From the NCBI GenBank assembly GCA_002104905.1, contig MCFE01000096.1:62001-126000 (forward strand): a stretch of 64,000 bases of DNA, given 5' to 3'. Under the pieces are notes generated by a model that did no database searches, was not told the origin of the DNA, and saw only the letters and a program-made list of their open reading frames with translations. This document shows, piece by piece, positions 1-58,200 of this stretch. Within the stretch, counting starts at the first letter, position 1. Each line of letters opens with the position of its first letter. The translations under genes and the position numbers were made by a program. Source of the DNA: Basidiobolus meristosporus CBS 931.73 (taxonomy: Eukaryota > Fungi > Basidiobolomycota).

Positions 1-1021
1 TGCTCCAACTGAACTAACTGAACCGGCCTGGAGTGCCATGTGCTGACGCGTTCTTTTACTTACCAAGGGCTCTGGTGGTTGAGGCACTTCATGTTGGTCA
101 TCATCAGTCAGTTCACCAGAAGTAACTTGCTGATGGTCAGGCAAAATGGCATGCGCATGCGTGCCTTGATGCATTGATATGGCCCTTGGCTGAGTTCATT
201 GTGATGCTGCATGTTGATGCAACTTGGTTTGCTCCAATGGACTTGTGTCTAAATGAGCAGTTTGGCAAGTTCTGGTAGTTTTGCTCTGGTAAAGGGTGTT
301 GGCGTAATCTGGACTGATGTGCGCCAGTGCGCTGTGGTAGCAAGAGATGGTAAGGAATCCAGCAAGGTGTGCTGGTGCAATCTGGATGATGTTGCTTGCA
401 GTCTGTATTCTTCCTCCTGAAGCTCACTATCTGATTCCTCAAGGTATTCACTTACCCTCTTTCTGATACTTTGGAGCTGTTGCCTGGATGAGTCCTGTGT
501 ATATTGCTCTTGGAAGCCACTTAGCTCTACTAATATATCATGCAGTACATTAGTCATTTGAGGCAAAACTCATTCAAAACCTCTGTGGTTCCCAAAGTTG
601 AGGCACAAACAGATGCATCCAGCCCATACTGTGCAAATTATGTGCAAAATTGTTCCTGCACGGCTTCTTCATCAAATCCCCTCACTCTCAGCTCATTCTT
701 GATTTCAGTACTTGTCTTGTTATATATCTTCTTACATACATTGGCTGGCATCTTGATGTAGAACTCATGCCACAGCTTTCTACTCAAATTCTGTCATCTT
801 TGTTGACTCTTCAAGGTATCTAGTTCTGCTAGATTAATCAGTAGTGCCCAAATATCTGTATGAGGGCTCATCATAGACACTTGGGCCATACTAAAATCAT
901 TTGGCAAGAACTCAAACGGATCCAACATCAACTTTTCCAGTCTGGACCACACTTGTGAGCTGGGGGATAGGTTTTGTCTGGGTTGTACTAAAGATGAGTT
1001 GAGACATGGTATGGGGACCAT
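1..1021 (-). pseudogene. PHIS accessory ORF2, disrupted (homolog of 15349-16137)
   Basis: ORF pieces 794-1021 and 249-566 match the 15349-16137 protein (TNVL.D.LV.LSGFQEQYTQDSSRQQLQSIR). Confidence 0.7.
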
Positions 1022-1323
1022 GGCAACAGATTTGGATACTTATATAGCAGTATATTGGCATCAACCTGGTCTTATATGAAATATATATGAAAACTAATGA
1101 GATTGTTGAATTTTCCATATATTATGCATGATGCATCTTGGATTGCATTGAAATGGAAAAGATCACATCAATCACAGATTTCCTATTTGATTATAGACCT
1201 ATGAGTAAAGCATCAATAAAAGTACCAAGGCATTGTTTGCGGATGATTTTTGCAACATAATGATGGGATACATGGTGATTGATGGAGATTTAATCATAAT
1301 GCATTAAAAATCTGATAAATAAC

Positions 1324-2264
1324 GTGTATTGCACCAAATTGATTCAAACCACCTCCATACAATCATCCACCAATTTTAATATGAATTACTCATCTGAATG
1401 GTCTTTTCTCATCAATCCCATCACTACCACTGGATTTCCTTTTGATACAATAGAGGAGATCTATTCCAAGTACTGTGGACCATCAACCCAATCTACTCAA
1501 GCAGATCGCTTGTTAAGCTTCTCTGCTATTACAAGAACTATTGCCCCACAAGGTTTCATCCCACCATCCATGGCAACAAGAGTCCTAGAAGCTTTCATTC
1601 CCAACTGACAGCAATGGAGAACCACCTTGCAGAGTGTATGAATGACTTGGAGCAAGCTTGGAATACTAGGTTCAGAAGCTCCAATAGACTTCCATATCCC
1701 AGAGTGTTCAGCAACAGGTTCCATATAAGGAGTATTTTGGATACCTGCCCAGTGAGGATTAACAGACCTTCTAGAGGGCAGAGGCACTTTTATTCTGGCA
1801 AGTACAAGGCACACTGTGTGAAGTTTCAAGCACTGTCTGACATTGAGGGTAACATCATCTGGCTTATTGGGCCATTTGCTGGAAGTAGGCATGACAAAGC
1901 ACTCTGGGTAGAGAATCATCCAGAATTCAGTAGAGGGGAGAAATGTATGGCAGACTTAGCCTATATAGGAGAGGATTGTCACAGATTACGATGTATTACA
2001 GCTTATAGGAAGCCAAGGAATGGTGTGCTTAGCAGGAAGCAGAAGCTCTACAATGGGATATTTAATCATTTCAGAGTGAGGGTAGAGCACACATTTGGAT
2101 ATCCGAAGAGATTCAGCATATTGGCAGGTAAATACAGAGGAAAGTCATATATAGAAGAAAACAACAGAATAGGTAAAATAGGTAAGATACTTATTAATGC
2201 ACAGTATGCTTATACAAGAAGACATCCACTGAGAGAAATGTGTTTGGAGCATTTTGAAGAGTAA
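1324..2264 (+). pseudogene. DDE_Tnp_4 (PIF/Harbinger/IS5-like) transposase, frameshifted near 1608
   Basis: ILDTCP...KFQAL...GSRHD...ADLAYIG...RVRVEHTFG carries the D, D, E triad motifs. Confidence 0.88.
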
Positions 2265-2449
2265 ATAAAGCAAGTAAAGCACTATTCTGAGCAACATAAA
2301 TAAGATTGAGTAAAATTACCAGTAACTGTATCATACCACTGGCATCATGGTAGAAATTATAGTGCCAGATAGTGCCATAGGGTGCCAGATTGATCCGGCA
2401 CTATGTGGCACTATCAAACGGAACAAGTCTAATACCTCTATAATGGCTT

Positions 2450-2915
2450 GTAGTCACACTTATCACCTGGTGCAAACTAAGTTAGGCAAATTTTTGGCAC
2501 CTTTTGGCTCACCTCGGCCTGCTGAGTATAGTGGATAGAGTGATAGCCCAGAACAAGAGGCTCACCAATGAATTGTGGGCTTGTATCCTCTCACTATAGT
2601 GCCATGCATAAGACTGGCAAAATCCTAACATGCAATGAGATAACACCCAAGAAAAAAAATGCCAGGGATTCTTCATGGAGCCACAAGAGCCCAGTAATAA
2701 GTTTACTGCCAAAGGATGTGATGTTGTGTTCCAAGGAGTGGCATGTTTGCCCCAAAATCAGTAATGGGGGATTTGAGGATTGACTACTGCTTCTTGCCAA
2801 AATCATTCTAGGATGCAACTTACTGTATACTTGGTACAAATAGACAGCTAACATGCAATAGGCAACATATGACCCAGAGACTGTCATGATACCATCATGT
2901 ATTAGCAGTTGCAAG
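2450..2915 (+). mobile_element. CACTA/CMC transposase 5' fragment
   Basis: Colinear nucleotide similarity to 52590-53060 and 42990-43400. Confidence 0.7.
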
Positions 2916-3039
2916 ATTTTTGAACATTTTGAGGGAGGCTTCTACTTTCTTCAGGAGGGATGTTTCTGGTTAATGCTGCTACCAATGTTACCAGTCTTGG
3001 TATAAGAGTTATAGAGGAATAGGGAGTTTAGCTAGTATT

Positions 3040-3350
3040 GTATTCACTAAAACTTGAGCTGATCTTTATTGAGGTTCCAGCAGCTCCTTATATACATTTT
3101 GCCAGATCAATTTCTGACTGATTGTATTTCCTAATGTAGGCTGTGGCTGATAACTCATTTGATTATATCATCATCACCCAATCAGATCCTACATAATATA
3201 TCTATTTCTGTCTGATAAGGATCTGATGATTCATTTGCTGACTAATGCTACTAATTTGATAGAAAATTCTGATATACTGATAAGCTAAGCATATAACTAA
3301 TTGATCTGACTAAAAACAGATCTGACTTAAACATTCAAGCAACAGATCAT
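3040..3350 (+). mobile_element. Decayed Copia RT fragment
   Basis: Reverse complement of ~22310-22600; KLELIFIEVP resembles the Copia EEIYMEQP motif. Confidence 0.5.
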
Positions 3351-3399
3351 AACATCCTTGTGTTGAAAACTTCAGCTGAAATAAAGCTTATTTGATAAT

Positions 3400-3935
3400 G
3401 ACACTGCTCTAAAGATCTTCTCTCAGGGCTCCCATGCTGATTGGGCAATAAAAGAGACAAATCTGTCCAATAAAGAAATCCTGCTCATCAACACATAGGG
3501 CATCAAAGGCTTTTCTCTCCTTCTCTTGAAACTTCTCAACTTCTTCTGCTAATCCTTTGGGTTCAACCTCTTTCCTGTTACTATATTTCAGAGCTTTCAT
3601 TCCTCCAGGTGGATCTGAGTCTTGATTCACTAAAGTCTGTAGTTCTTCCCATTCAACATCCCTTTTACAGGGAAGATGTTTGTGTCATATGGTTTACTGG
3701 TAGAAGTCATCTTTAGAATAGTCTAATGCAATCAGGGCTTATAACCTAGACCAATTTAAGAAGTGTCTTTGATCCAAGAAACTTATCAAGAAATAGTGAT
3801 AACAGTTGAGCAGCTTCTGATTCTTAAAGTGGCTAAGTATTAATATCTTAGCAGTAGAAGTACAATTGTAGTACTAAGTTAGGGGAACTTCTCAATAGTT
3901 AGAAGCATTCTGGAACAGTGTAGGGTTAAAATAAA
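3400..3935 (-). mobile_element. Copia family 2: LTR 3' half (3747-3935), PBS (3735-3746) and gag start
   Basis: The LTR half matches 26700-26890. The PBS reads GGTTATAAGCCC. The gag start translates as LNGKNYRL..IK.QIHLEE then EKFQEKERKAF. Confidence 0.7.
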
Positions 3936-3937
3936 AT

Positions 3938-4673
3938 AGACTTTTTCAGCTGGGTATACCAAATTGAGCCATGAGTGCCAAATAGTGCCGTAGTGTGGCA
4001 GAGAGGCAAAGCAGACCTTTGCCTGGCCACAGAGTGTGAAAGATAGCTCAAACTCTCAATGCAAAGCAGCCCATGTGCTTTACCCACTGAGCTGGAAGAA
4101 ATTCCTTTTCCAACCTTGTTTATTCTGATGAATATAGTGAGTGAAGTGTACAAGCTCAGAAGGACTGAATACATGTATTTTGTACCCAATACCCATGAAA
4201 CTCTGAATCAAGCTCTGGAGGTTTGTAACATGTCACAATCAAGTAATGCACTATCTTGGTCCACTCATGCTTTCTGGTACTCTATTGAAACATTAGTCCT
4301 AAAGTGAAACCTATACAAAGCACTTATAGTGCCACATAGTACTAATGGCTACTATAACTCCATAGATTTTTGCAGCATGTAATAAACCTCTGAAGCTTAA
4401 AATCAGAATGCCATGGGTGTTGAGTGCTAAATGCATGACTTTAGCTCTTCTGCACTCTTGCAAATCATGTAATACATTGATCCCAAAATGAACATTGGAA
4501 AGAGGATTCTCTCCAGCACAATAAGTGAGACATAGGGGCTGATTTGCAGGAAAATGTAGAGCTATGTTTCATACTTGGTGGCCATATATGGGACTACCTG
4601 GGCTCTCTGGCACTCTATGGTGTTATTTGTCACAAATGGCTCCATTTGACACTATCTGGCTGGGCATTATGTA
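3938..4673. mobile_element. Foldback MITE, decayed copy
   Basis: About 736 bp, colinear with 7061-7793 including the central spacer; right end degenerate. Confidence 0.75.
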
Positions 4674-4679
4674 TTAACC

Positions 4680-5900
4680 TGAAACTTTTCCAGAATGTCA
4701 GCTTTGGAGAGTGCCCTAGTTGGTTATTTTGGGCAATATCAAGGAATTGTTGGGCCAATACAAGAGCTTTTGCACCCATTCAGTCATATCTCTACCTAAA
4801 TGTGAGTTGTCACTGCAACCAAACATTAGCTATTTACTTCTTCCAAAGCTTTGTAGTAGTATATATCAGGTACCCTAAAAGTGTTGCAAAATCTGTACAA
4901 CCACTCTATTTCAATCAGATCCTGATTTTACATATTAACCAGCTATTGCTTATGCTACATCAGTTCCCAAGTAGACCGCTACCATGAATAAAATCTGACT
5001 GCTAGCTATTGCTTAATGGAAAAGCCTTGAGTAAAGTATGATATATTATAAATGCAATTAAATGTGGTTTGGGCAATCTTAGTATATTCTCCACAGGTGT
5101 TTCTACCGGCTTGCAATTTTGTTGCTGAGCCGTCTAGGCATGTTGGTAATATTGTTATGAAAGTTCAGCACAATATTCTGTGCAGATATACTGAATTGAG
5201 CCTCAGTTTGAACATAATGGATCAGCTTCTCACAGTTACTCATCTTGAGCTTGCAGTCAAAGATCATATCTTGCCAGTTCAATTGCCTCCCTGTTGCTCA
5301 GAGCTACTGTTTGGCCTTTTTAAAGAACCATGATGATTTTCCCAATATGAGCTGCTTACATGTATACTGTGCTCTGTTGTACTCCAAGTGTACCCAATCT
5401 CCTATAAATATGTACCTGCTGTGCATAGTTACATCTAAGCCTTCATTACCTGATGCAGATTTTAAGGCTTGACACATATAGAAAGATAAGCTTCAAGTGA
5501 TCACTGAATATATACCACTATGATCCTGGAGCATTTATATTCTAATTAATATTCCAGCTGGCAATATCTGTTCTGATCTGGTATCTGTAGAGGTATCTTA
5601 CATTTCTGACTGTGTCAGGTATTTGCCTTCCACATTGGTGATGATTGCATCATCAGGTGGCTGGCCAATACTACAGTTACACTCCAATCTGCCTTTCCTG
5701 TACATATAAGGTCTATGATCTTGATAAATTTGAAATTCTACAAGCATACACTCTCAACTACTTGAATCCCTTACATGCCATACAAATATCCCTTTTATAC
5801 TCACTGGCTCCAACATTGTATGTCTCTGGCCAGGGATATAGTGAAAGCCTCAACTGCCAAAGATTAAGAGATACTGGAGTCTGGTGTTTGCATTTACATA
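4680..5900 (-). mobile_element. Decayed Copia RT/RNase H
   Basis: Manual translation across many stops gives NCKPVETP, GTDVA, FGCSDNSHLGRD and K*PTRALS (compare KQPTVALS). Confidence 0.6.
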
Positions 5901-7060
5901 CTTCTAACAACTCAGTATCTTGTGATGCTGTCAGGAGTACAAGTTTATAGCATCTCTGTTGCCATCTGCTCAAGATAAATACATCAGTATCAGTAAACTC
6001 AGTTCAAAACCTGTAATCCACCAGTGTCTGACCTTTGCATATGTAGATCAGTATTAATCTGACAAGAGCTTGGCCATACATAGTTTAACAAGATAGAGTA
6101 ACAGTGAAACTGCTGCTAACACATAGAATAGCTCAGTGCCTAGACTTTATGTGTAATACAGTTTCAGCTCAGTGTCTTGGGTACTTCCTAATGCTCAGCC
6201 ACATGTGTTGATAGTTCCAGCACAAGCAGCCATGCTAGACAAAAGTTCTGGTTTGATCTTAACAATAGGTGAACATGCAGATGGCACATCAGGAGAGAGT
6301 AGTAATTTTGTGACTGCAAGTAAGAACTAAAATCAGAAGGACCAGTGTTGGCTTGTCAGGTGCATTCTAGCTGCAAGCTAATACAAAGTAGACTAATACT
6401 TCAACAAAAAGTTGCCTGGATCTCACATATCTCAAGAAAAGGTAGCTTGGAACACACATAATTCACATTACTACATAATTTACATCTAGAAGTGCAAACT
6501 TTGCAGACACTGGGCAAAGTATTTATATTGTAAATAACAATAGTTGCACTTGGATGATGGCTCAGTTGAAATCAACAGATGGATATCTTGTCAAAGCTGG
6601 CAGGAAGAATAGTAGAATGTTCTGCAAACTTGATGTTTCATGAGAAAATTATCTATGCTTATAGCTTTGAAGTGTGGTATTACACTAGAACCTGTTAAAT
6701 ATTGGCAGGGTGAATTGTTTAGTTTGGGGCACTCTAGGACACTCTGGAAAATTTTGGTTTCATGTCTACCCCAGGCAATATGTTAAGAAAGCAATAGGCA
6801 GTAAGTACAACACAAATTTCTGGTCAGCATATATCATTATCAAATATATTAATAATCAGATCCATAACAAATTCTTATCAAACACTCTTCCTAAATTGAA
6901 TAGTAGTTGTTATTTCTAATGCCAACTTTACTCTTTGTTCTTGAGGATGTGGCTTGGAGCTAGTAAGGGCATCTGCTATAGTACTCTCAGCTGGCCAATA
7001 CATGAGTTCTAGTAACTGGTTCTCTGCCCAATCACAATAAGATGCTGATCAATATATATT

Positions 7061-7793
7061 AGACTTGTTCCGTTGGATAGTGCCACATTGAGCCATGAGT
7101 GCCAAATGATGCCATAGTGCGCCAGAGAGGCCAAGTGAGCCTATACTTTGCCACAGAGTGTGAAACATAGATCTGCATCCTCATGCAAAGCAGCCCTTGT
7201 GTTTCACCTATGATGTAGGAGAAAATCCATTTTTTGATGTTTTTTTGTGGATCAATGTTGTGCAGGATGTGTAAGAGCACAAAAGAGCTGAAGACATACA
7301 TCAGGTACTCAATACCCATGGCACTCTGAATATAGCTCCTGTGGCTTGTAACATGTCACAAAAATGCATGGCACTATCTTGGTCCACTGGTACTATCTGG
7401 CACTATATTTAATTATTACCCCCAAAGTGAGATCTATACAAAGCACTTATAGTGCCAGATAGTACCAGTGGACCAAGATAGTGCCATGCATTTTTGTGAC
7501 ATGTTACAAGCCACAGGAGCTAGATTCAGAGTGCCATGGGTATTGAGTACCAAATGCATATTTTCAATCCTTTTGTGCTCTTACACATCCTGCACAACAT
7601 TGACCTAAAAAAAAAGGCCAAAAAATGGATTTTCTCCAAAAAATTGGTGAAACACAGGGGCTGCTTTGCATGAAGATGCAAATCTATGTTTCACACTCTG
7701 TGGCAAAGTATAGGCTCACTTAACCTCTCTGGCACACTATGGCATCATTTGGCACTCATGGCTCAATGTGGCACTATCCAACAGAACAAGTCT
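7061..7793. mobile_element. Foldback MITE: 347/346-bp inverted arms, 40-bp spacer, ATT target duplication
   Basis: Arms 7061-7407 and 7448-7793 are near-perfect reverse complements. The ends AGACTTGTTC/GAACAAGTCT equal the PHIS termini. Flanks are ATT and ATT. Confidence 0.92.
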
Positions 7794-8758
7794 ATTTTCT
7801 GCTAAAGCAAAATAGGTGTAGTTTCCAGACTATAAGTTATAACTCTCGTTATCTTAAAAAAAATAGCAAGCTCAGAGGGCACTGCAGCAAACTCAAATAG
7901 ATCTCTTAACTAATTGACTTCTTTACTATCTTTGCATGCTGGCATGCACACTGCTAGAGTAGAAAAAAACACAGCTTTTGGCTGCCTGTCACTTTGACAG
8001 AAATCTGTACCTCCAACACAAACAGAGGTGTGCCAGGTAGTAAGCCAGCTGCCATCAGTTGTTCTCCTTATTATGCATCAGAATATTCAGCAGCATACAA
8101 GTTGCTGAAGTGTTGATATAGTGGCTAATTATTCAGATGTTGCACCATTTAGGTGCTTGGAACCGTCATGCATGCAGCTCTATTGGCAGAATAAAGTGCT
8201 TAACAGTATACAAGGTTGTAGTAAGAACTAGAGGAGTGGCTACTTGCTTGTACTTTCCAAACCTTAGTATTCAGGAATATCTGAATGTTACCAATACCAA
8301 TTGAGCAACATTTGTCTTCAATTTTGTGCAATTATCTAAAATCTCCAACAATTTAGTCTGGAGCTGCCCAGTGAAGCTATATTTGTACCCAAACCACTTT
8401 TCTGATCAGCTGTAGATAATAGACTTGTTCCATTCAATAGTGCCACATAGTGCAAGCCTGGTTATGGTGCCAGATTAATCTGGCATTATCTGCCATCAGG
8501 CCAGTGGTAGGTTATAATTACTGGTAATTTTACTCAATTTTACTTATGTTGCTCAGAGTAGTGCTTTCCTTGCCTTATTTACTCTTCATAATGCTCCAGA
8601 CACATTTCTCTCAGTGGATGTCTTCTTGTATGAATATACTGTGCATTGATCAGTATCTTAACTATTTTACCTATTCTGCTGTTTTCTACTATATATGACT
8701 TTCCTCTGTATTTACCTGCCAATATGCTGAATCTCTTCAGATATCCAAATATATGCTC

Positions 8759-9145
8759 TGTGGGTTATTACTGACTGTACTTTGTGAGTGGGAGAGCTTG
8801 TAGGTCAAGTCAGTACCACTTGGTTCAGAATAGCTTCCGATAGAAGGTAGCAAGGTAATAAAGACTTCTGTTTATTTTGTCCAAATCTCGTTGTTCTTCC
8901 TGGTTCAATTGGGTAGATATATATATCACTTGGGGGGGCTTAGACAATAGACAATGTGTTATAAAATAGGGGTGTGAACACCTTCCTGTTATGGTAAGTG
9001 TTCTAACTAGATAAGGGCAGGGATAGGAGGGGAGGACGTGTGGGGGAATCATAGGGAGGGTACTGGAGGACTTTGGGTAGGACTCTGGAGGGAACTCTTG
9101 GGAGAACTCTTGGGCAAAGAGTGGGTACTACGTTGAGTACTCACA
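8759..9145 (-). repeat. Gypsy-1 3' LTR
   Basis: TGTGGG...CTCACA on +; direct repeat of 14089-14475. Confidence 0.95.
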
Positions 9146-9431
9146 TATCCCGGGGGTTAAGTGGGAGCTTCATCCTCAAAGTTCTTTGACTAACTTGCTT
9201 CTCCAGGATTGATTTTGTTTACGGAGCATCTTGGTTCTTGCTAGTGGGAGGGGTATCACCAGTTTTGGGTGAACTGTTTCCTTCGGCGCTTTCCATATGC
9301 ATTCTTTTGTTCTCCCCTTTGGGCAAACTCCCTTGCGCATATTATTTGTACCTATATCGACTAAAATCTCCTCTAATAAACTTCAAATGTATCCCGTGTC
9401 TTCCTCTATCCTTGTCCTGATAATTGTTTAA

Positions 9432-12400
9432 TCACACTTTGGTCTCAATGATGATCGGTGGATCATCATGAAACGGTTTCAGATGGGCTGGCGCTACGTT
9501 GCTGATTGTCTTATTATTCAGGGTGATGGTGTACTTTGGTCCGTGGTCCAAACTGATAACGGTGCATGGGCCAATCCATCGGGGTGTAAATTGTGGGCGG
9601 AACTTGAGGCCTGCAACGGTTTGGTTGTACCACACCTTATTGCCTGGTTTCCACTTTTGTCTTGTTAGTTTCTCATTTTTGGGTGGAGGGGGAAGGTGCT
9701 TGTTGACATTTTCAAATACTTTTATGTATAGGTGGGCAATACAGTGTATCAACCTTTCTATATAGTTGTTATGTGTTGTCAGGGGGACACCTTCCATCGT
9801 CAATCCAGCTTCCTCCCGCCACTTGGGTCTTTGTCCATATAGGATTTCATATGGGGAGAAACCCGTTGTTTTATTCGGTGTGGTGCGCATTGCTAGGAGT
9901 GTCAGTGGGAGCAGCTTGGCCCATGATTGGGGAAGTTCCCAGTGAAGCTTCTCCAGTATGCGGCAACACGTCTGGTTCATCCTCTTGGTTAATCCGTTAG
10001 TCTGGGGGTGATATGTGGCCGTGAAGGCTTGTTTCACGCCCATCATTTCGCACAGGTGGGCCACGGTGTTGTTCAGGAAGGAACCACCATTGTCGGACAG
10101 GAGTATCTGAGGATATCCATGTCGGCAGATGAGGTGTTCTAGAATGAATTGGGCGGTTGTCTTGTGATCTTTATTGCGGACGGCTTGGGCTTCTACCCAC
10201 TTTGAGAAATAATCGGTAGCAATTATTATGTATCGTTCTCCTTTCTTTGTTTTCATAAAGGGGCCAACAAAGTCAATCCCTACTTGGTGGAAGGGCAGGT
10301 CAACTGGTATTGGTGCGGTTGTCCCTATCTTCTGACTCTGGTTGAATCCTTGGCAAGTGGTGCATCTTCGTAATGTATCAGTAACGTCGGTCATCATTTT
10401 TTGCCAATAAAACGTTTTTCTTAACATCTTATATGTCATTAGGGGGTTAGCGTGTCCTAATGACATATGTCTTTCTCGTATGATTTCTTCACAGGCTGCT
10501 AGTGGGGGTACCTTGGCTCTGGACTGTCCTTGGAGGAACCATAGTCAATTTTCTTGTACTTTGTACTGACACCATTTCCTTCAAAATTCTCTCTTCTGTT
10601 TGCTTGTAATGACGTGTTTGGGATACCTCCCTTTTTTTTTAAAGCAGATTATGTCCTCGTACTCATCACTGACACGTATTTGGCAAACGGGATAGCGACT
10701 GAGGAAGTCTGCGTCCTGGTGTTTCTTGCCAGCGCGGTGAATTATTTCAAAGTCGTATTGCTGTAGTCGTAGGGCTCAACGTGCTAGTCGGCTGGTAAAG
10801 TCTTTAGTTTTCATCAGCCAGACCAGTGCGCTGTGGTCCGTTACTATTGTGAATTGGCAACCATGTATGTATGTATGGAATTGTTTAATTGAATAAACAA
10901 CAGCCAGACATTCTATCTTGGTAACGGGGTAGTGGCATTTGTGTTTGTTTAGCGAACGGCTCACGTAACCAATCGGGTGGAATTTGCCAGGTTGGTGGTA
11001 TTGTCCCAGTATGGCGCCTATACCGGTGAGGCTTCCATCACAGTTAATAAAAAATCTTGCATCCAAATTGGGAAATTGTAACACTGGCGGTGACATCAGG
11101 GAATATTTCAGCTGATCAAATGCTCTCTTTTGAGGCTCCGACCATACAAAACACTGGCCCTTTTGCGTCAATTCGTATAGGGGGGCTGCTATTGTTGCAA
11201 AGTTTTTGACAAAGCGGCGATAGTAGCCGGCTAATCCTAGGAATCCCAACACTGCATTAATGTCCTTTGGTGCAGGTGCATTTTGAACGACTTTCAGGAG
11301 TGACGTAGATGGGTATATTCCATCTGCCGAGATCTCGTGGCCCAGGAACAACAATTTTGTATACAGGAAATGGCACTTCTTGGGATGTAGTTTGAGTTGG
11401 TTCTCAAGGAGGGATGTCAGGATACGTTGCACGTCGTGTATATGTTCTTCTACATCAGGGGAATATATTGTGATGTCGTCCAGATACACAAGGGTGCATT
11501 CCCATCATAGATTTCCTAGCACCTTGTTGATCATCCTTAGGAATGTAGCGGGGGCATTGCACAAGCCAAAGGGTAGTCGGTTCCATTTGTATAATCCAAA
11601 CAATGTTATAAAAGCGGTTTTGGGTCGATCTTCCGGGGCTACTTCTACTTGCCAATACCCGGAGATTAAGTCAAGAGAGCTAAAATATTTAGCTACAATT
11701 AATCTGTCCAAGAGGTTGTCTATTCACGGTAGGGGAAACATGTCCTTCCGGGTGACGGCGTTCAATTTCCGGTAGTCGATGCAAAAGCGTCGCTTTCCAT
11801 CTTTCTTCAGGACTATCACTACGGGGGAGGCCCACAGAGACTGGCTCTCTGTAATGATGTTGTCTTTTAACAAAGTTTCAATTGTCTCTTTGATATAGTC
11901 TGTGTCAATTTTCGAATTCCTATAGGCTTTTTGCTTGATGGGGTATTTGTTGGCAAGGTGGATTTGGTGATATACCCCAGGTATATGACCAATTACTTGG
12001 TTCTTAGAGAATACTTGGGCAAGCGGACATATTCCTTCTAGGAACTTGTCTCGTAACGTAGGCAGTAGACCGGGGTCCACATCTAGTTTGGGGAGTTCTT
12101 CTTCTGGTTCCTTGTTTGTAGGTGGTCCTTGGTCATCTCCGTCAACTTCCTCTAAGTTTAACAATGGCACTCCTCTAGGCAATGTCACCGTGTGTCGCCC
12201 GTTGTTAACCACTAAGCATTTCAGGCTTTGCTTTTCAAATTTTGGTGGTATCCATACTTTAGGGATCAAGATTCCTTCCAGTTGCTTGGATGCTTTTGCT
12301 GCGGTTATCATTCTTCTGCTTGTTGAATAAGCTATTGGTGTTTCTAATGAGATCACCGTCTCACTGGCGGGTGGTATTTTTATCACCTTTCGTGTGATGA

Positions 12401-13170: not shown

Positions 13171-13174
13171 GGGC

Positions 13175-14047: not shown

Positions 14048-14067
14048 TACCTCACTTGTGCTTATTT

Positions 14068-14084
14068 CCGCAGAGACAGCACCA
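14068..14084 (-). promoter_or_regulatory. Gypsy-1 primer binding site
   Basis: TGGTGCTGTCTCTGCGG, 4 nt inside the 5' LTR; the cognate tRNA was not identified. Confidence 0.7.
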
Positions 14085-14088
14085 AATA

Positions 14089-47250: not shown

Positions 47251-47804
47251 AAGATTAGTTTGCTTTGACCCAGGCTCAAAGCTGAGAGGGGGGTGTATGT
47301 AGTGGGGTCACAGTGACACCCACTGACAGATGTGCTCATTCCTATATTTTCTACTTCCCTATTTCTCTACTACCCTTAGTTAGTTTTATCCCAGTTGTCC
47401 TACTTAATCAGTAGTATCCCATAAGCCAACTGACTATCACAGCTGCTTACCTTATTGCATAAGTTATCCCTCAATTTATGAAAGATTACTAGCTATAAGT
47501 GCTTTTATATTACCTAAGCACCTGTGCCAGTACCCATGACACATGACCAATTTGTGTCACCATCCTTACCAATTTCATACCATACATGGTGTCTCTATGT
47601 TGCACAGGTTTCACACTACTGATTCCTGATTGGTTGGATATGCTGTGCCTATTGGAACCTTCTGGCACATACTTAGTACATTCTTGGGTCATTCTGATGT
47701 CATTAAGATTTCTATTGATATCCATAACCTTCTGGAACACTATGATTAGTAATCACTTAGCCAGTAAGAAAAGTATATAAGGGAGGCTATTGCTTAACAA
47801 CAAA

Positions 47805-50333
47805 TCAGACATATCAATAACTGTTATGGCAAGATCTATGATCCATGATCAGAAATTTTCCTATGATTTTTGGGTGGAATCAGTTCCCTCAGCTGTTTAC
47901 CTTAAAGATAAGAGTTATAACAGAATACTTTGTAATTCTACTCCATTTGAAGCATGGTATGGAAACAGACCAGGTGCAGAGCATCTAACAATATTTGGGT
48001 ACACAGCATATGCCAATAAACTGCCCAGAAATCAGACAAAATTTGTGCTAAAAAGTGTAAAATGCATATTTTTGGGCCACTGCAATGAGTGAAGGGCATA
48101 CAGAGTCTTCAATACCAAAGCAAAGAAGCTGATCAAGTCTAGGGATGTCAGATGATGAAGAAATTTGATCTCAAGTCCACCAATAGTCAGGATTGAATCA
48201 GAGCAAAACAATGAAATCTTTTTCATTCCAGATAACCCTACAACAATGGTTCAGCCTGAATCAGTGCCCTGGAATATCTCAGAAGTGATCACTCCAGTAT
48301 CAAATGCAGGGAGATTAAATCAGACAAGAAATAGCCCAGATTACTATATCAATCATGGTACAATCTTAGCCTATGCCTACTCAGTCATATTGATGAGCCC
48401 CTGACTGTAAAAGGGGCTCTAAATAGCCCTCAGACAAATTTTTGGAGATCTGCAATGACAGAGGAATATCAGGCCCTGATGGAAGATCAAGTATGGGACT
48501 TAGTCAAGGTACCAATCAACCAAAAGTCAATTGGATGCTGAAGAGTCTGTAAGACATAATACAAGGCCTATGGTACAATTGAAAGGTACAAAGCAGGACT
48601 TGTGGCTAAAGGATAATTTTGTACATAAGGACTTGACTATACTAAGACCATTGCACCAGTAGCCAAGTTTGATTCCATCAGATAAATATTGGGTATTGCA
48701 GCCAAACAAAAGTTTTTTTATACATCAAATGAATGTAGAATCTGCATTTTGAATGAAGAACTTGCTGAAGATGTGTATATGGACCAGCCTGATAGAATTT
48801 GACCAAGTTCATCCCATTTAGTCTGCAAGCTTAAAAAATCTTCATCTGGTCTCAAACAATTGCCAAGAGCCTGGAATTGCAAGATAGATTCTTATTGGAA
48901 TCTTTGAGTTTCAAGTAGAGTAATGCTGACTATAGTATATACTATAAGCCAGATAGAGCAAATCCAGCTCTGTTAGCTCTATATGTGGATGATTTTATTG
49001 TAACTGCCAATAACCTCAAAACATTGGAAGATACTAAATCCTGCCTATCCAAAGAGTTCAAGATGTCCAATCTTAGAGAACTCAGTTGCTACTTAGGGAT
49101 AAAGTTCTCCCTATACAGAAGCACCCAGAACATCACCCTAAGTCAATTCAAGTATATTCAAGATATACTGAAGAAGTACCAAATGGAAGACTGTCAACCG
49201 GTAGCTACCCTAATGGGGACAAACCTCAGCTTGGTTGAAACTCAACCAAATCAAGAGAGCTTGGTGCCATCTGAAAGCCTTGACTTTCCTAATCAACTGA
49301 AGGCTGGCAGTCTTATGTATATAATGCCTGGAGCACATCCAAATACCTCATATTCAGTGGGAGTTGTCAGCCAGCATATTCAGAACTATGGATCTGATCA
49401 TATTACAGTAGTTAAACAGATTTGTAGTTACCTAAAAAGAGCTGCAGATATCTGCTTAAGATACACTTATAAGGATCCAGAAAGGATCTAGTGCAATACC
49501 CTGATGCTGATTGGGAACATAATCTGGAAGATAGAAGCTCTACCACATCACACACTATTCTTTATTGTCAAGGAGTAATCTCATAGAATTCAAGCAAGCA
49601 ACCAACTGTAGAACTTTTCACCACAGAGGCAGTGTATAAGGCAGACTGTGGAGCTACAAAAGAAGCAATGTGGCTAAGGAAGCTCTTCAAAGATTTAGGC
49701 CTATGTCAAAAATTGCCCAATACCTTATTTCAAGAAAATCAAGGAAGTATATAATTAGGTATAAGTCCAACTTTTCATGCTAAAACCAAGCACATGGATA
49801 TTAAATATCATTTTATACATGAAGCTATCAAGAATAACTTAGTTGGCCTAGTTTATTGTTCTACAGATGAAATGATTGCAGACATATTTACCAAACCATC
49901 AGCTAGAGAGAAGCTTGAATATCTTAGGTTAAAATTAGGACTAGTTAGTATGAACATTTAGCTAGGTAGGAGTGTTGTAAAGATCTGGAATTTCATCTAA
50001 GTATTCACCTAACTTAGTCCCTTATGTGAATACCATCAAATCCTAGAGAATACTGTCCAAACTCCTTGTTGGGATTTACCAAGAATAATTGCACCAAAAT
50101 ATCAAATACCCAGACAAGAAGGACTTGATAAGTTATCCAAACAGCCCCAAACTTTGCACACCTGCTCTTAGGGCCTTCCTAAGCCTATCCTATATGTTTG
50201 TTATGCCAATATCATGTAAAAGTGTAAATGCTACACTTACATTCAATATATCATTAGGTGAAATCCACATAATCTACTTGTCCTCTCAAGCACTTCCAAT
50301 ATCTCCAAGACTCTTACAACAGGTTTTGAGCCC
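47805..50333 (+). mobile_element. Decayed Copia: integrase tail, RT-RH, PPT, LTR (49973-50321) and a PBS-like 12-mer
   Basis: Nucleotide homology to 38666-40900; the LTR matches family 1; GGTTTTGAGCCC at 50322-50333. Confidence 0.88.
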
Positions 50334-50344
50334 AAAGGTCTAGC

Positions 50345-53300
50345 ACCTCAGCTCCCAGTCTTTGCAATAAGTCCTTGCAATATTCAAGTGCATTTTCTTG
50401 AGCACTTCTCTTGAAAAAGTGCTGCAACCTCTTGGTGAGCCTATTAATGTTCCAAAATTCCACTGAAGGCATTGTAGTAGTCTTTCAAGTTCTTGACATT
50501 GTAGCCTTGTCTGTCTGCAGGATCTCCACTCTGTCAACAATGGATGATGTGGAGGCTGTGGTTGACAAACTATCTCTCTCTGCAAACTCATCTACCTTGC
50601 TGGAGTGTAGCTCAAATGCCTGCACTTCCAACTCTGTGAAAACAGCTGTTTTATTGTTGGTAATTCTTCTTGGCTATGATGGGTTTCCGTCTGCTCCAGG
50701 CTTGCAGCATAAATTGGCAAGAACTGCAGTTTTTTTGCATGCTTCCCTGTCTCAGGCCTGGGTAGACATTTTCCCTTTATCTTTTCCTTTATCACTGCCA
50801 GGTCTTTCAAGGCTACTTTGTCTGAGTTTTTCTTTTAATGAACAACATTTTCTCCTTGATAAATTCTGCTCTGACACTTCTGTTTTGGCCTGCTTGTCCC
50901 TTGCTGGCACTCTTTGGGCAACCTGACATTTCTTGACTGCTTGTCTTGAGCTCTTGGCTATAGTTGTGATGGGCTCCTGAGAAAGCTGCTGGTTTCATCA
51001 ATGCCAGGTCCTTCACTACTACTTTGACTGAGTGCTTCTTGAGTGGTACTATGCTTTTACCTTGATAAATGTTGTGCTGGTGCATTTGTGTCTGCCTGCT
51101 TGTCCCTTATTGGCACACTTTCAGCTACCTGATGCCTTATTGATGCTTGTTTGGAGCTTAGGCCCTGCTTGTAATGGGCTCTTGAGGAAGCTGCTGGTTT
51201 TTAGCCATGGCACCCTTGTTCTTCTGCCTCTGATAATTTCTGCTATTCTTAAGATACTTTCTTAGCATACCAATGCTAGCCCAAAATCTGTTTGCCTGTG
51301 TGAATCCAGGATAATGCTCATAGAACAGATCAAGTGTATTCTGCTTGGCCTGGAGTTCCTGATGGTCCCATGGTATGCTGACCCTAAGGTGATGGTGTGC
51401 TAGACTTCTGACAGCCTCTTGAATATTAGCCCACTCTTCATTATTGCACTCAACAGCTTCTCAGATCTTCAATGTCTTTTGATTTTTAGGTTTTGGTATA
51501 AGTACCACTTTGTCTCCCTCCCATGCTGTGATAGGTTTTTCTATGGGCTTTATCTTTGGGCTCTGTTGTTATGCTTCAAAGACTGTATGGTGTTCAGCTG
51601 TTATTACATCAGGAAATGGCTCAATTCTTGGCTGTGACATTGAGCTGCTTGAGTTCCTTCTTTGCAGCAAAGATACTGCTTTTTCTACCTGGGACATTGA
51701 TTGATCTAAACATATTATCCACTCATCCTGTTCCTTGACTATTTCCTGATTTCTCTGGGCCATTGCATCTATCCTATCAGCCACTGCACCTAATTGACTC
51801 ATTAATGCTTTGGTATGAGCTGACTACATACTTGCTAATATGGGTGGGGGTGATGTTATGACAGCCACTTGCTGGTCTACAATTACAGGTATTGCATTTG
51901 CTACACTCTCTTCTACTTGTGCATAATGATCAGCTTGCAGCTCTGTAGAGGATTTCAATTGCCTACCTGACTGAAAGCCTGAGGAGTCTGCATTATTACC
52001 TTCAATGGGCACACTATCAACATGGCCTTTTTTGGATGTAACCCCACTTGTTGCACTGAATGTCAACGCAAGCTGCTGTCCAGCTGTTCTTCTGCTGCCA
52101 TCAGTGGTGAGGCTTGGTTGGGAACCAGATGACTTTGCTTTATTTTGTGGCGGCATTTATATGGAAGTAAGTCAAGTCAAAGGGGAATTAGTGTTACATA
52201 TATGTGGATATGTGGTGCTACACTTTATTTATAGTGCTTACTATGGCAGGTCATCATTGAATCTTACATTCATATAGGTGCAATATCTCAAATAAAAGAC
52301 TGTCTTAAATTCATATCAGTATTGACCAAAAAGTGATATAATATTGTTACATTGTTGAAGGTCAAACTGTTTGCCCCATGGACAAGGCTACTTTTAATCA
52401 ATGGCGTAAGAGAAGTGAAAAAAGACCATGTGGCTATTGTGGCAAGCCTCTCAGTCATGAAGCATGCAGACAGCATAGGAAGTATTACAAGGATCACAGC
52501 CAGTGTTTGCCACACAAGTTATATTTGACCATTCATCAGTCACTACTGTATCAACATTATCTTGCCAGCCAGTTGATACTTCTACAATGGCACATAGCCA
52601 TCATGTAACCTTGTGCAAACTGAGTCAGAAGAGTTTGTGATGCCTTTAGGCTCACCTCAGCCTTCTGAATATGGCTTGCTGAGTGATAGCTCCAACAAAG
52701 AAGGCTCATTGATAGGTTGTGGGCCTATCTCCTCTCAAAACAGTACCCTGCATGAGCCCAGTCAAATTCTAATATGCAATGAGACAACACCTGTTGAAAC
52801 AAATGCCAGGGATGATTCATGGAGCCAAGTGAGCCCAGTAATCCATCAGCTGGAGAATGATGTATTGATGTGGCTAGAGAAGTGGTGTGTTTCCACTAAT
52901 ATCAGTAAAGGGGGCTTTGGGATTTACTACTACTTCTTGCCAAAATCATTCCAGGATGCAACTTACCATGTACATGGTACAAGTGAACAACCATCATGCA
53001 GCTGGCAACATATGACCCAGAGACTGTCCTTATTCTATCATGTGTTGATAGTTGCATGGCATTCACATCCAAGAACGCCACCATTGCAACATGTCCAAAT
53101 TGTCAGGAATCCACTGCCATTGAGGGAAGCATTGTTCACATTCCAGATATATTCCATTAATACCCTGTCAAAAGAAGCTCATGCAGTCCAACAAATATTG
53201 CAAAGCTATAAAGTACCACACTCAGTATCAATCAAGCACAAACATATCCAATATATTGGATGACAAGCATTACAAACAGCTAAGAAGCAAGGGCTACTTT

Positions 53301-55541
53301 AAAGGTATGTACAACCATGCCTTTGACTTAGCACTTGATGGATTCTCATCAGACAAGTACTCTGCCAGCAAATCCTACTTGCCACTGATTCTCATCAACC
53401 TGAATCTGCTACCTATCATACAGTATCAGAGCAAAAATCTGATGGTAGCCTCACTGGTATCTAGGCCTAAATCACTGTCCAACCTGTATGGCTACCTGTA
53501 TCCATTGCTGGATGAGTTTTGTATGCTTTCCAGTGGGATAGCAGTAGATGGCCATCATGTCAAAGCGCATATCATTATCTGCATTGGAGATACCCTAGGC
53601 TTCAGCAAGATAACAGTCTTTTCTAGGCATAATGGATGGTGTTGCTGTCAATTGTGCAGTATCCAGGGGATTTACTCAATAGCTAACACACATTATTAAT
53701 ACCCAAACACCAACACCAAGCACATCATCTTCCCACAGAGAGAATTAACAGAAGCTGGCAAGCAATTGCAGCCAAGTTGGCAAGCTATAAGCCATTAACC
53801 AGAATATGGAATCAGTTGGAAACTGGAGATACTTGAGATAGAGGGTAGCTGTTGGAGCAAAAGCTTTCCACTGGGAGCAACACATTTGCTTTTCAACAGT
53901 AATCCCATACTGATGACCAAGTTGTAAATGGATTGTTTCAAGCTAAATGAGCCCTTCAAGATACCGGAGAAATTTAAAAGAATTGGCAAGATATTACAGA
54001 GTTTCTGCTACTCTGGGTATTTCTCATAGGCTCCAATCAATATCCATATGTATATGCAACAATACAAATGCAAAGACTGGATGAACTGGATATGTATTTA
54101 CTCAAGTGGTGTACTGAAGCCATTCCTACCAAGAGTACATTGGAAGCATTAGGAGTCATATGTTGACATTGTAAGAATATTTATCCAGAAGCAGATCACC
54201 AATGACACCTTGACACACCTACAGCTATTGTGCAAGGAGTTTATAATAAGACTTGAGTGGCTATACTACAAACATAAAGCTGAGCATGTAGATCTCTGCC
54301 ACTACTGTATCCATTCTTGACTCTATCTTGCTTGGTGTGTGGAGAATATTGGGCCTTGCTTCACCTTTTGGGTGCTTCCTATGGAGCAGATGTGTGGGGA
54401 GATAGGAAGACAAGTCAAGTTGCTGGTACTACCATATGCCAATCTTATCAAGAATATTACCTTCAAGTTGGTGATGGATGTGATGAGCTGGTACATGGAG
54501 GACAGCCAGGAAGAATTGGAAAATACTGAGGATAGATGTGCATATGGAGACACCTATGCCTATGGAATTAAGAAACTAAGCAGCCCTAATGTGAGGGTAA
54601 TAGTTGAGTAATGCAAAGTTGGGCTGGGTGCAACAAGCAGCTAATTTTTATTAGGAAAGCCTTACCAAAGTATACCAGGTTCCTCTTGGTCACAAGCCAA
54701 CCTCTACACCATTCAATACAGAATTCACACAAACAAGAGCCAGAGTGCACCCATAAGGGGGACTAGAATCCGGCAGGGAGATGAAATATATTGGCCAAAT
54801 ACCAAAAAGTTCTTGGCGGATATTCAGGAGGTATTCATGGCAGAAGTGGCAGCAACCAAGCATATGTTTGCAAGATGTATATGTTACCAGCAGTACAAAG
54901 TATATAGCAACCTTGCAAGTATCACACTAAAAAGCCGTGAAGCTGAGGTAATAGAGGTATGTCAATTACAGCAGGTATGCACATGTGTAGAGGTTAGGAA
55001 GCAGGAGACCATAGTTTTTTTTATTCAAACTATATGTGGAATACCCAAGGTAGTAGTGGGCAAGCAAACAAAGAGGGGTGATTCTACAGTGGAATATATG
55101 AATTGCACAAGGGGAGGTAGAAAAATGAACTACCATTTGGTAAGTTGGTACAGTAGCATTATATAGAACTAGCTATATGCTGCCATACTGCCATCATAAT
55201 ACCATTAGAGACTCTTGATGAGGCTGTCAAACACCATCAAGTTTTTTGCCATTTAAGGCAATTTGATGTACTGGCCAGTTAGATCCATTTTGAGTAGTTG
55301 TAGAGTGCACTAAGACTGCAACAATGCCATGCAACTATTGCCTGAGCACAAATCAAATCCTGTTAAGTTTTATACACTTATTTATCAGTAAAATTAGCTA
55401 AACACTATTGTGATACTGTCAAAAGATTGTTAAGAGGGTCATCAATTCCAAGCTGCAGGTATTATAATGGTCTCCAAATGTGATCCTGATGGCTGATCTG
55501 GATTGGATCCACCTGTAGGACCAAATTATTCTTCATAGGGG
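50345..55541 (+). mobile_element. CACTA/CMC transposon copy D
   Basis: Accessory ORF on - (50345-52156), CxxC exon (52378-52520), transposase remnants (52613-54611), terminus ...CTTCATAGGGG. Confidence 0.85.
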
Positions 55542-55599
55542 ATTAATTTGCTCTAATTTATATTGCAATATCTGACAGATCCTGTTGAAGTTTAAGGCA

Positions 55600-57380
55600 C
55601 TTCCGGGGTTTCTGGCTGGAGAACTTTGTACAAGAGGCTTCATGAAACACATCTGCATTGCCTGATAGTTCAAGTATAGCCTATGTAGGCTTTGACTTCA
55701 TTTGGAAAGTACCCCAATTTGTGGTAGTAGTTTTTTCCTGTTTTTCTTCTTTTTCATTTTCTGCAGATGACCCATGGGATATTCCTTTTGTGGGATGGTT
55801 CTGGACATCTTTATGGATGGGACCACAGTGTGTTTGAGCATAGAAGTCCTCATGACAAAATTGGTCCATAATATAGGACTATTTGAGAGTGATATAACCA
55901 AAGTTGACATCCTCTTAGATCAAACATAACTCTTGATAGAGCTAGCCAAACTTGATCTAATAAACTGACTTTGAAAGCTAGCTTCATCAGTACTTTGGTA
56001 TCAGACTCCAATATACCAGCTCTTTAAGTTGCAGAGCTTGGCAGTGACTTGATCAATCACAATTATTATGATCTGATCCAGAGAATCAAGTGTCACCAAG
56101 TGTTTTCTCCTACTGTAATAGGCTATATATATATAACAAGTATAAAATATTATGTCATCTTTGGAGTAGCTCTTAGCTAAATACTGGCTGACTGTTGCTT
56201 AATTGTGTACTCCAATCAAGCTTGCAATCATTTGCTGCACTTCTTTTCAGCTGGTGGTAGAATTTCCTTGAGTTGATTTTGCTGAGTTTGTACAATACCT
56301 TCTCCCACTGTTTTGAGACTTATACAGAGTGAAAGCACATCTAACAGCTTCATACTTAGCTCCTGGTACATTGGTTTCAGTATCAAATCTCTTGATACAA
56401 TTATAGCATTCTTCCAATGGATTTTGTGCTATGATGGTACTCTGGGTGAATATAAATGTATTATATATCAATAGGATCCTAAAAATTGATGGACCTTGTT
56501 TCTGAGATCTTCTTCCATCAATAGGTGGTCCAAAATGGTGGTCAACTGCTCCAGTATCTGTATTCATCACCCTTATTTGGAGCAGCAACAACTGGTAAGA
56601 TCTTCCTCCAGCAATCATTCAATAATGATCTATTTTTTTTCTTGCAATTCAAGGTAACATTATACCCAAAAGCTCATCTAACAGTCAACTGAGGTCATTT
56701 GAATACATATAGCAATATATCTCACTATAGATCTGGACCCACAATTGCTGGAATAATGCAATTTGCTTGGTAGTGGTAGAGCACTCAATGTCATACATTT
56801 CTTGACATATTCAAATGCTAGCTTGATAGACTTTCCTTCATAACTAGCTTGAGTAGTTGCTGAATGAGTCTTTCAAGGCAAGGCCTTCTTCTCCGCAGCA
56901 ATTTCCTTGTGAGCATAGCCCTTTTAGCAGCAGGAGTCATCTTCAACTTTAGCAGAGCAATATTGTGAAAAGTCTTTCTCCAGACAAGCAGAAAAGTATC
57001 CAAGGCAAAGTAGACACCTAGAGGATAGCAAGCTTAGGGCTCAAAACCTGTTGCAATATTCTGAGGAGTATTGGAAGATGAGTTACATGTTATTCACTGG
57101 TAGATTTATTGATCAAAAGTATGGTGTTTATACTTTTGGTAAAATAGAGCAAGGAAATGTGTAAATTTGTTAAAGAAGGTCCCAAGAATATATGTGCAAA
57201 GTCTAAGGGCTTTTGGACAACATTGTGAAAGATCATAATCTGGGTACCTGATAATTTGGTGAAAATACTCAAAGTAAATCCCAGCAAGAAATATTATCAG
57301 GACAGAATGGTAATCAAAGAATAAGATCTATGTAACTAAGTTAGCATGAATATTTAGGTGACAACTTTACAATTACAACT
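55600..57380 (-). mobile_element. Old Copia relic with 5' LTR (57049-57380) and PBS (57037-57048)
   Basis: LTR related to family 1; PBS GGTTTTGAGCCC; protease-like DTGAVDH; integrase-like IVIDQ and DQFCHE. Confidence 0.6.
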
Positions 57381-57389
57381 AGGACCACC

Positions 57390-57592
57390 TTAATGCTATG
57401 CAAACCTCATGGAAAAACCACAAAATACCGTCAAATTTACTACTATATTTGGCAGATAAAGCAGCAAAACACTGTTGCAATCCCACCAGAACATTGTGAA
57501 GAGGGTCAAGAATAATAAGCCACCAGCATTGTGAGATCCTGGTGGCTGATCTGGATTGGATCCACACAGGACCAAATAATTTTTCATATGGT
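57390..57592 (+). mobile_element. Isolated CACTA right terminus
   Basis: GGCTGATCTGGATTGGATCCAC...GGACCAAA.AATTTTTCATA matches 45830-45876 and 55490-55537. Confidence 0.65.
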
Positions 57593-57599
57593 GTTGTGG

Positions 57600-57830
57600 G
57601 CTTCCAAAAGGCTAACTCTAATAGTGACCATAAAATCACTGGGTCGCAAGCTTGATATCTGACCATTGATCTAATAGATTCCAATAAAAGGTTAGAAACA
57701 GGGGTGCCAAGCTCTTGGGCTGTTGGTTTGCCACTTGATCTGTTGTTGATCACAGTGAGAGCTTGATAATGGTTTGGAGTATTTAGCAAAAAGTGTGGAC
57801 TTTGCCAACAGCTTGCAACAACACACACAT
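57600..57830 (-). mobile_element. Copia integrase relic
   Basis: HYQALTV...LLLESIRSM...W resembles the rve core. Confidence 0.4.
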
Positions 57831-57854
57831 AAATGTACTACTTTGTTGTTTCAG

Positions 57855-58200
57855 TTTTGTAAGAGTCATGGAGATATTGACAGTGATTTGCATTTGATAA
57901 GTCATCAAGTGAAACTACTTAGTGTACTTGTTCTCCAAAAGTAGTATTTAGACTTTTACATGGTATTGGAGAAACAGACAAGTAGAATGTGCTTAGGAAG
58001 ATCCCAAGAGCATGAGTGGAAAGTTTAGGGCTGTTTGGACAACTTTGAGAAGCATCATGTTTGGGTGCCCAATATTTGGGTGATGATATTCCAAGTAAAT
58101 CCCAACAAGGAATTTGGTCAGAGTTCACTACTATTTGCAGGTAATGATCTAAGTAACTAAGTTGGGTGAATATTTAGGTGCAATCACAAGATTTCCAACA
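57855..58200 (-). repeat. Diverged Copia family 1 solo LTR, the last repeat before the genes
   Basis: GTAAGAGTC.TGGAGATATTG ... AAGTAAATCCCAACAAGGAATTTGG ... CAACA. Confidence 0.8.

Follow-up and report, generated by a model that had tools for sequence, protein, structure and literature searches.

The 64,000-nucleotide stretch at positions 62,001 to 126,000 of contig MCFE01000096.1 of the zoopagomycete fungus Basidiobolus meristosporus CBS 931.73, referred to here as the window, is occupied at positions 1-58194 by a nest of transposons, including unclassified stretches, as delineated by domain matches and by families obtained on BLAST of the window against itself; ordinary genes follow. The loss of CpG in this nest is two-tiered, with TCG/CGA lost about ten times faster than the other CpG contexts. 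Specificity for CpG, independent loss on the two strands, restriction to the repeat block, recent activity and the bias towards TCG are all observed in the window, and the most likely mechanism, which we consider probable, is CpG methylation of the transposons followed by deamination of 5-methylcytosine (5mC); we infer both the presence of methylation on the nest and the enzyme responsible for it. Early-diverging fungi are usually summarised as rich in N6-methyladenine (6mA) and nearly free of 5mC, and a CpG scar this deep, recent and restricted to transposons implies a strong cytosine-directed genome defence in at least Basidiobolus. The analysis pertains throughout to this single 64-kb window, which provides a single transposon/gene boundary and two long terminal repeat (LTR) clocks.

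CpG loss in the transposon nest

Outside the young Ty3/Gypsy retrotransposon, the old repeats retain 144 CpGs in 52.5 kb, about 7 % of expectation (observed/expected ratio, o/e, approximately 0.07; some 93 % lost). When calculated per 1-kb bin, the CpG o/e ranges from 0.00 to 0.25 at positions 1-9000 and 14001-58000, and from 0.48 to 0.75 at 9001-14000, which is occupied by the young Gypsy element, while the ratio for the window as a whole (0.24) is vertebrate-like. The GpC o/e of the nest is normal (about 1.0-1.6), and TpG and CpA are in symmetric excess (1.2-1.6 per bin; 1.31 and 1.34 overall, respectively). The ratio (TG + CA)/CG reaches 60 in the nest, a depletion deeper than the human genome average. 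A preceding sequence-only reading of this DNA had counted 0 CpGs at 21001-21600 despite common GpC, and 8 CpGs at 61081-61140; both counts are exact, and the former interval contains 34 GpCs. The abundance of both TpG and CpA, which had been contrasted with classical repeat-induced point mutation (RIP) of the CpA type, is likewise borne out, and the RIP indices are negative across the nest (TpA/ApT 0.6-1.1; (CpA + TpG)/(ApC + GpT) 1.2-2.2). Classical RIP was rejected on the basis of these indices, and neither a CpA or other non-CpG target nor an enrichment of TpA was found.

The hypermutation had further been proposed to be limited to repeats and to spare the neighbouring genes. This is supported by the binned analysis, in which depletion is confined to the nest and the CpG o/e is 0.72-0.93 per 1-kb bin across 59001-64000 (0.8-0.9 for the genes at 58.6-64 kb), against 0.00-0.25 in the nest. 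Sparing extends to the non-coding sequence around and within these genes, with an o/e of about 0.7 in introns, 0.84 in the 1.2 kb upstream of the adaptin gene and 0.77 downstream; single-copy intergenic DNA is thus not equally depleted, as judged from approximately 1 kb of clearly non-coding DNA at the one boundary. TCG has an o/e of 1.06 in the genes, the highest of the NCG contexts there.

Substitution spectra were derived from nine paralogue alignments, using the columns in which dinucleotides differ by a transition at both positions. CA/TG pairs were counted 94 times, while the remaining seven double-transition classes yielded 4-18 pairs apiece, an excess which indicates that a single ancestral CG became TG in one of the copies and CA in its paralogue. 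The reciprocal CG>TG and CG>CA differences noted earlier between paralogues are therefore real, and the spectra, when separated by context, contain an excess of CpG over other transitions, so that the process is CpG-specific. Under a simple two-lineage model, the larger families are estimated to have possessed 29-65 ancestral CpGs, of which 80-95 % have been lost per copy. The estimates include the two halves of a Tnp2/CACTA-like element (65 and 57 ancestral CpGs; 83-92 % lost per copy) and the non-transposase part of a PIF/Harbinger element, for which copy B was compared with 16-899 (46 ancestral CpGs; 80 % lost per copy). Decay in situ is observed for the Gypsy LTRs, the Tnp2/CACTA-like element, its 5' part and the PIF non-transposase part only.

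Outside CpG, each lineage has accumulated 0.02-0.07 transitions per site and almost as many transversions, and the resulting transition/transversion ratio of approximately 1-1.5 argues against a general C>T hypermutation; the transition excess is confined to CpG. No preference for a 5' T was seen at C/T mismatches outside CpG with conserved flanks in the paralogue pairs, and the 464 T(C/T)G sites include 0 mismatches, all being already TTG in both copies. A generic TC-directed (APOBEC-like) deaminase is ruled out by this lack of TC preference outside CpG. Within every copy, TG and CA outcomes are intermingled (runs-test z from -2.0 to +2.4, with one family marginal), which points to independent events rather than strand-coherent bursts, and the runs tests along each copy revealed no strand-coherent tracts. 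Independent hits on both strands are evident from the TpG/CpA symmetry, the runs tests and the additive two-strand fit described below.

Two tiers of CpG loss

The hypermutation is CpG-specific, as had been claimed, but it is not uniform over CpG, since TCG/CGA is lost approximately ten times faster. In the old repeats the o/e is 0.072 for ACG, 0.119 for CCG, 0.099 for GCG and 0.018 for TCG, with about 98 % lost after T, while the corresponding values in the young Gypsy element are 0.69, 0.67, 0.42 and 0.34. Rates were estimated using an equilibrium model, in which loss from either strand is balanced by creation from TG and CA and the old nest is near equilibrium. The ratio of creators to CG is 22-52 for classes without TCG, 206-223 where one strand carries TCG and 378 in TCGA, and the additive two-strand model accounts for every one of the 16 NCGN classes, which behave almost perfectly additively. 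Relative to the background transition rate, the fitted C>T rates are 21-fold for ACG, 14-fold for CCG, 15-fold for GCG and 199-fold for TCG, where the non-TCG values represent lower bounds, since the non-TCG class may be short of equilibrium. A block bootstrap places the TCG rate, at about 190 times background, within 131-320, and the ratio of TCG to non-TCG (VCG) at 10.7 (5.8-17.8), and the halves of the nest agree in direction. The lower tier, at 14-21 times background, is of the order known for methylated CpG in mammals.

A model-free comparison was also made, in which TCG was found on at least one strand in 26/69 CpGs lost in both copies, against 3/41 of those surviving in at least one copy (odds ratio 7.7; Fisher p = 3e-4). 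A competing-risk comparison of the sites of old pairs where one copy has lost the CpG gives 1 against 3, with the surviving TCGs at these sites probably being new gains. TCG stands out from the other contexts in its C>T loss, as it does in the hypermutation of the Pucciniomycotina. C>T change at CpG without a 5' T is, however, elevated here as well, with ACG, CCG and GCG depleted by 88-93 %. The two-tier rates predict a difference in methylation between TCG and non-TCG sites.

Element age, nest structure and neighbouring genes

The young Ty3/Gypsy LTR retrotransposon (8759-14476, minus strand) is nested in PIF/Harbinger copy B. The two 388-nt LTRs of this element (8759-9146 and 14089-14476) share 98.2 % identity, and the GCTC present next to either end (8754-8758 and 14477-14480) represents a target duplication of 4-5 bp. 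The insertion target inside the PIF/Harbinger copy is not CG-centred. This youngest element retains many CpGs, as had been noted, with 145 in its interior (o/e 0.58) and four and three in the LTRs. The seven differences between the LTRs comprise five CpG transitions and two transversions, while one CpG is still shared, and the predominance of CpG transitions in a pair this similar indicates that the process was recently active. At the three asymmetric LTR sites, where TCG is present on one strand only, the TCG strand was hit each time, and an estimated 40-70 % of the LTR CpGs have been lost with only two other changes. The pol region maintains one frame over approximately 1200 codons without a frameshift, and is interrupted by five in-frame stops, all of them TGA. 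The stop codon at 11726-11724 falls on the one residue that separates positions 134 and 136 of the Ty3 reverse transcriptase (RT), within the motif PLP-x-IDNLL, and this residue we take from the motif, rather than from the alignment, to be arginine. The stop at 10778 is a non-CpG change, because it replaces a conserved tryptophan, while the remaining three would be compatible with CGA>TGA. A word search with the RT/RNase H piece yielded distant relatives only (at most 46 % identity), and no copies of the Gypsy family were found in metagenome contigs. When compared with distant homologues, the interior presents only six conserved arginine columns, occupied by four CGN, one CAT and one TTG.

The claim that CpG loss is graded by element age stands in part. 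The order of the CpG o/e values fits, at 0.58 for Gypsy (non-CpG divergence of the LTR pair 0.5 %), about 0.1 for Copia (LTR pair 4 %) and 0.03-0.16 for the older paralogue pairs (9-23 %), but the grading is confounded by the recoded Copia and PIF transposase lineages. The gag, protease, integrase and RT frames of Copia (38666-42382) are still 190-641 amino acids long, and arginine is encoded by AGR and CGN codons at 60:5 in Copia and 75:1 in the PIF transposase (135:6 combined), the latter counted over the frames 1614-2264, 14379-15257 and 27482-28432. The transposase part of PIF copy B contains 0 CpG, with 24 AGR and 0 CGN arginine codons. CGN codons outnumber AGR codons in Gypsy (28:13) and in the host adaptin (22:4). 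Decay of CGN codons would replace arginine, and its retention as AGR indicates that the Copia and PIF transposase lineages had lost their CpGs at a time when they were functional, before these insertions took place, so that the Copia element is a recoded lineage rather than a decayed copy. Furthermore, the Copia LTR family has no ancestral CpG across six copies. The pattern, as judged from codon usage, looks like a long-term CpG purging of functional transposon lineages. An internal control for the inflation of divergence by CpG decay is provided by one PIF copy, whose transposase part, free of CpG, shares 94 % identity with its paralogue, against 81-86 % for the part that bears CpG. CpG content reflects the time since insertion together with the history of the lineage in the genome, and is not usable naively as a transposon age clock in the B. 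meristosporus genome.

Four PIF/Harbinger copies and two large Tnp2/CACTA-like copies could be distinguished in the nest. The left part (1-8758, unstranded; CpG o/e 0.00-0.20 per kb), which is characterised by self-BLAST families and a DDE_Tnp_4 domain, includes PIF copy A on the plus strand (1-2431), with a non-transposase part at 16-899 and a transposase at 1050-2431, as well as a Tnp2/CACTA-like fragment at 2432-2913, foldback repeats at 3928-4656 and 7051-7798, and the end of PIF copy B to the left of the Gypsy insertion (8414-8758). The rest of copy B follows the insertion on the minus strand (14477-16164); its transposase part (14477-15257) is free of CpG, while its non-transposase part (15218-16149) bears CpG. 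The middle of the nest (16165-36080, unstranded; 0.00-0.18 per kb) includes unclassified CpG-free stretches, PIF copies at 23543-24367 (minus strand) and 27229-28613 (plus strand), a second Copia-type fragment (25064-26460), a Tnp2/CACTA-like fragment on the minus strand (29142-31692) and Copia solo LTRs (33374-33720 and 34074-34420). Copy 1 of the Tnp2/CACTA-like DNA transposon, on the plus strand and with a Transposase_21 domain, is split into 36081-38305 and 42988-45880 by the insertion of a Ty1/Copia LTR retrotransposon (38284-42990, minus strand; LTRs approximately 95 % identical). The two repeats were recognised as one element because self-BLAST revealed them to be collinear with the uninterrupted copy 2 (50439-55541). 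CCTC is present on either side of the Copia element. The right part of the nest (45881-58194, unstranded; 0.00-0.23 per kb) further contains an integrase fragment (46408-46788), a truncated Copia copy 2 (47809-50339) and a Copia solo LTR (57857-58189), with which the recognisable transposon sequence ends. Tandem direct repeats of approximately 207 nt occur near the 5' end of both Tnp2/CACTA-like copies (36413-36846 and 50769-51201) and may be subterminal repeats of this transposon. The foldback at 7060-7794 has arms of approximately 190 nt which are 88-92 % complementary, with related copies at 3928-4656 and 26890-27225, and may be a hairpin-type non-autonomous element. The stretches 16150-22301 and 55542-57159 have neither a paralogue in the window nor a Pfam match, yet they are CpG-free like the recognisable transposons. 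No tRNA genes were found in the window.

The boundary between nest and genes lies at approximately 58.2-58.6 kb when 200-nt bins are used. In the last solo LTR the CpG o/e is 0, the next two bins have 0.11 and 0.35, and the value is 0.85 from 58601, while the GC content climbs from 0.42 to 0.49 over a transition zone of approximately 400 nt (58195-58600, unstranded) that separates the last transposon piece from the first gene. This zone could be the result of methylation spreading into the 3' flank of the first gene, or could be an unrecognised transposon remnant. The spared region (58601-64000, unstranded) carries three ordinary genes, namely a mitochondrial ribosomal protein L28-like (MRP-L28-like) gene (59001-59492, minus strand), the AP-2 alpha-adaptin gene (59783-63051, plus strand), with adaptin domains in the long open reading frame 61014-63215, and a gene with a tRNA_bind_2 domain, of which the 3' end is included (63680-63979, minus strand). 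The adaptin exon shares 100 % identity with a protein of B. meristosporus CBS 931.73, which rules out a human or vertebrate source in spite of the vertebrate-like CpG o/e of the window, and the exons of this gene were placed by mapping the database protein, without a joined spliced gene model. The MRP-L28-like and adaptin genes are divergent and approximately 290 nt apart (59493-59782), with a CpG o/e of about 0.8-1.2 in their shared promoter.

Candidate mechanisms and comparison with known systems

The two mechanisms proposed from sequence alone, 5mC deamination and a CpG-directed RIP-like process, remain the right shortlist. Under the former, which we favour, the transposon nest would be densely CpG-methylated, now or recently, and the methylated cytosines would deaminate to thymine on both strands independently, continuously and only within the silenced block, while the neighbouring genes would be unmethylated and keep their CpGs. 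The TCG bias would reflect a higher level of methylation at TCG, or else cytosines that deaminate more quickly or are repaired less well in this context. Long-resident lineages (Copia and the PIF transposase) have adapted by purging CpG from their genes, on account of which CpG poverty is no straightforward measure of copy age. The published inventory for B. meristosporus (Funabiki et al. 2023, PMC10538959) lists a maintenance-methylation set of DNMT1 (ORX99839), UHRF1 (ORX90637), two HELLS proteins and a CDCA7-like protein (ORX82853), as well as two Dim-2-like enzymes and DNMT2, while DNMT3, DNMT5 and DNMT4/RID were not detected. Phycomyces, also an early-diverging fungus, combines enzymes of the DNMT1 and Dim-2 classes with CG methylation on transposons (PMC11258239, PMC13297926).

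Several points weigh against methylation and deamination as the explanation. TCG is not known to be the favoured CpG context in mammals, and a 190-fold excess lies far above the rates known there. Plain spontaneous deamination may be an incomplete account of the approximately 190-fold TCG excess. The rate estimates assume mutation equilibrium and context-independent back-mutation. The window holds one transposon/gene boundary. The 5mC column for B. meristosporus is blank in the inventory (PMC10538959), a search of the literature yielded no methylation data for the species, and a recent review places early-diverging fungi at near-undetectable 5mC (PMC13297926).

The height of the upper tier could also reflect two superimposed processes, namely methyl-CpG decay (approximately 15-20 times background) and a separate attack on TCG (approximately 200 times) by a cytosine deaminase, or by a methyltransferase acting as a deaminase, that requires both a 5' T and CpG. 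Such a combination, which we regard as rather unlikely, would be consistent with the two separated tiers and their additivity over the strands (TCGA 378, TCGV about 206-223, VCGB 22-52), the bootstrap ratio of 10.7 (5.8-17.8), the presence of TCG in 26/69 lost against 3/41 surviving CpGs (p = 3e-4) and the hits on the TCG strand at the three asymmetric LTR sites. The same tiers would arise, however, if TCG were simply far more fully methylated, and the absence of TC preference outside CpG rules out generic APOBEC-like activity. It is doubtful that Basidiobolus carries a dedicated TCG-directed mutator (approximately 200-fold) atop methyl-CpG decay, one that it would share with the rusts and anther smuts as the defence behind their RIP-like TCG hypermutation; were this the case, the system would predate the Dikarya by far and would not depend on RID, and a culturable fungus would be available for finding the enzyme.

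A homology-triggered RIP-like process of the Pucciniomycotina type, in which duplicated DNA is recognised, probably around the sexual cycle, and TCG, and more weakly other CpG, is enzymatically deaminated in bursts, appears improbable. All CpG contexts are lost by at least 88 % here, while CpG without a 5' T was reported as not elevated in the Pucciniomycotina (PMC3318451), RID/DNMT4 was undetected in the published inventory (PMC10538959), the TG and CA outcomes are mostly interspersed, and CpG-free stretches without a paralogue in the window, which may be repeated elsewhere in the genome, are equally depleted. On the other side stand the TCG preference, at about ten times VCG, which is shared with the RIP-like signature of rusts and anther smuts (PMC3318451), the two Dim-2-like methyltransferases listed for the species (PMC10538959), the mild strand clustering in one family (z = -2.0) and the estimated loss of 40-70 % of Gypsy LTR CpGs alongside two other changes, which could reflect a burst. 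That no mutation took place in situ, the nest being built of families already CpG-poor on arrival through inherited composition or codon recoding, is very hard to credit. While the Copia and PIF transposase genes are CpG-poor, largely open and rich in AGR arginines (135:6), and six copies of the Copia LTR family lack ancestral CpG, this would leave unexplained the eight-fold excess of CA/TG discordance between paralogues, the dominance of CpG transitions among the Gypsy LTR differences, the loss of 80-92 % of an estimated 46-65 ancestral CpGs per family, and the TGA identity of all five Gypsy pol stops. As the sole explanation, CpG-poor arrival is refuted by the first three of these, and it can be a contributing factor only.

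A transposon-directed methylation scar is a type of phenomenon that is already known, and transposon-targeted CG methylation occurs in Basidiomycota and in the early-diverging Phycomyces and Rhizophagus (PMC13297926, PMC11258239, PMC8298701). No paper on CpG or TCG hypermutation in Basidiobolus was found in the literature searched. Classical RIP, as it occurs in Neurospora and other Ascomycota in dependence on RID or DIM-2, resembles the process described here in inactivating repeats through C>T changes that create stop codons, and Dim-2-like genes are present in B. meristosporus. It differs in that the target here is CpG, CpA is enriched and TpA is not, the transition/transversion ratio outside CpG is ordinary, strand-coherent tracts are lacking and RID was undetected in the published inventory (PMC10538959). 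In Zymoseptoria tritici, Dim2 is reported to raise C>T mutation specifically in methylated repeats during mitotic growth, without the need for a sexual cycle (PMC8016269). The mechanism we propose is of this general kind, in that a methyltransferase would increase C>T change in repeats; the lineage is a different one.

Methylation-driven CpG decay, as observed in vertebrates and fungi, is matched by the nest in its CpG specificity, its independent strands, its excess of TpG and CpA and its restriction to transposon blocks. The non-TCG tier, at approximately 14-21 times background, is of the mammalian order. The DNMT1/UHRF1/HELLS set listed for B. meristosporus (PMC10538959) adds to this likeness. 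Unlike in such decay, the nest exhibits a strong TCG preference, and the phylum is usually described as poor in 5mC. TpCpG RIP-like hypermutation of the Pucciniomycotina was reportedly described by Hood in 2005. As characterised by Horns et al. (2012, PMC3318451), it differs from the loss described here in that C>T at CpG without a 5' T was reported as not elevated, where such CpG is lost by 88-93 % in the nest, and the Basidiobolus host, a zoopagomycete, lies far outside the Dikarya. Both favour TCG and are restricted to transposon-like repeats, and the TCG bias links Basidiobolus to the long-unexplained signature of the rusts and smuts.

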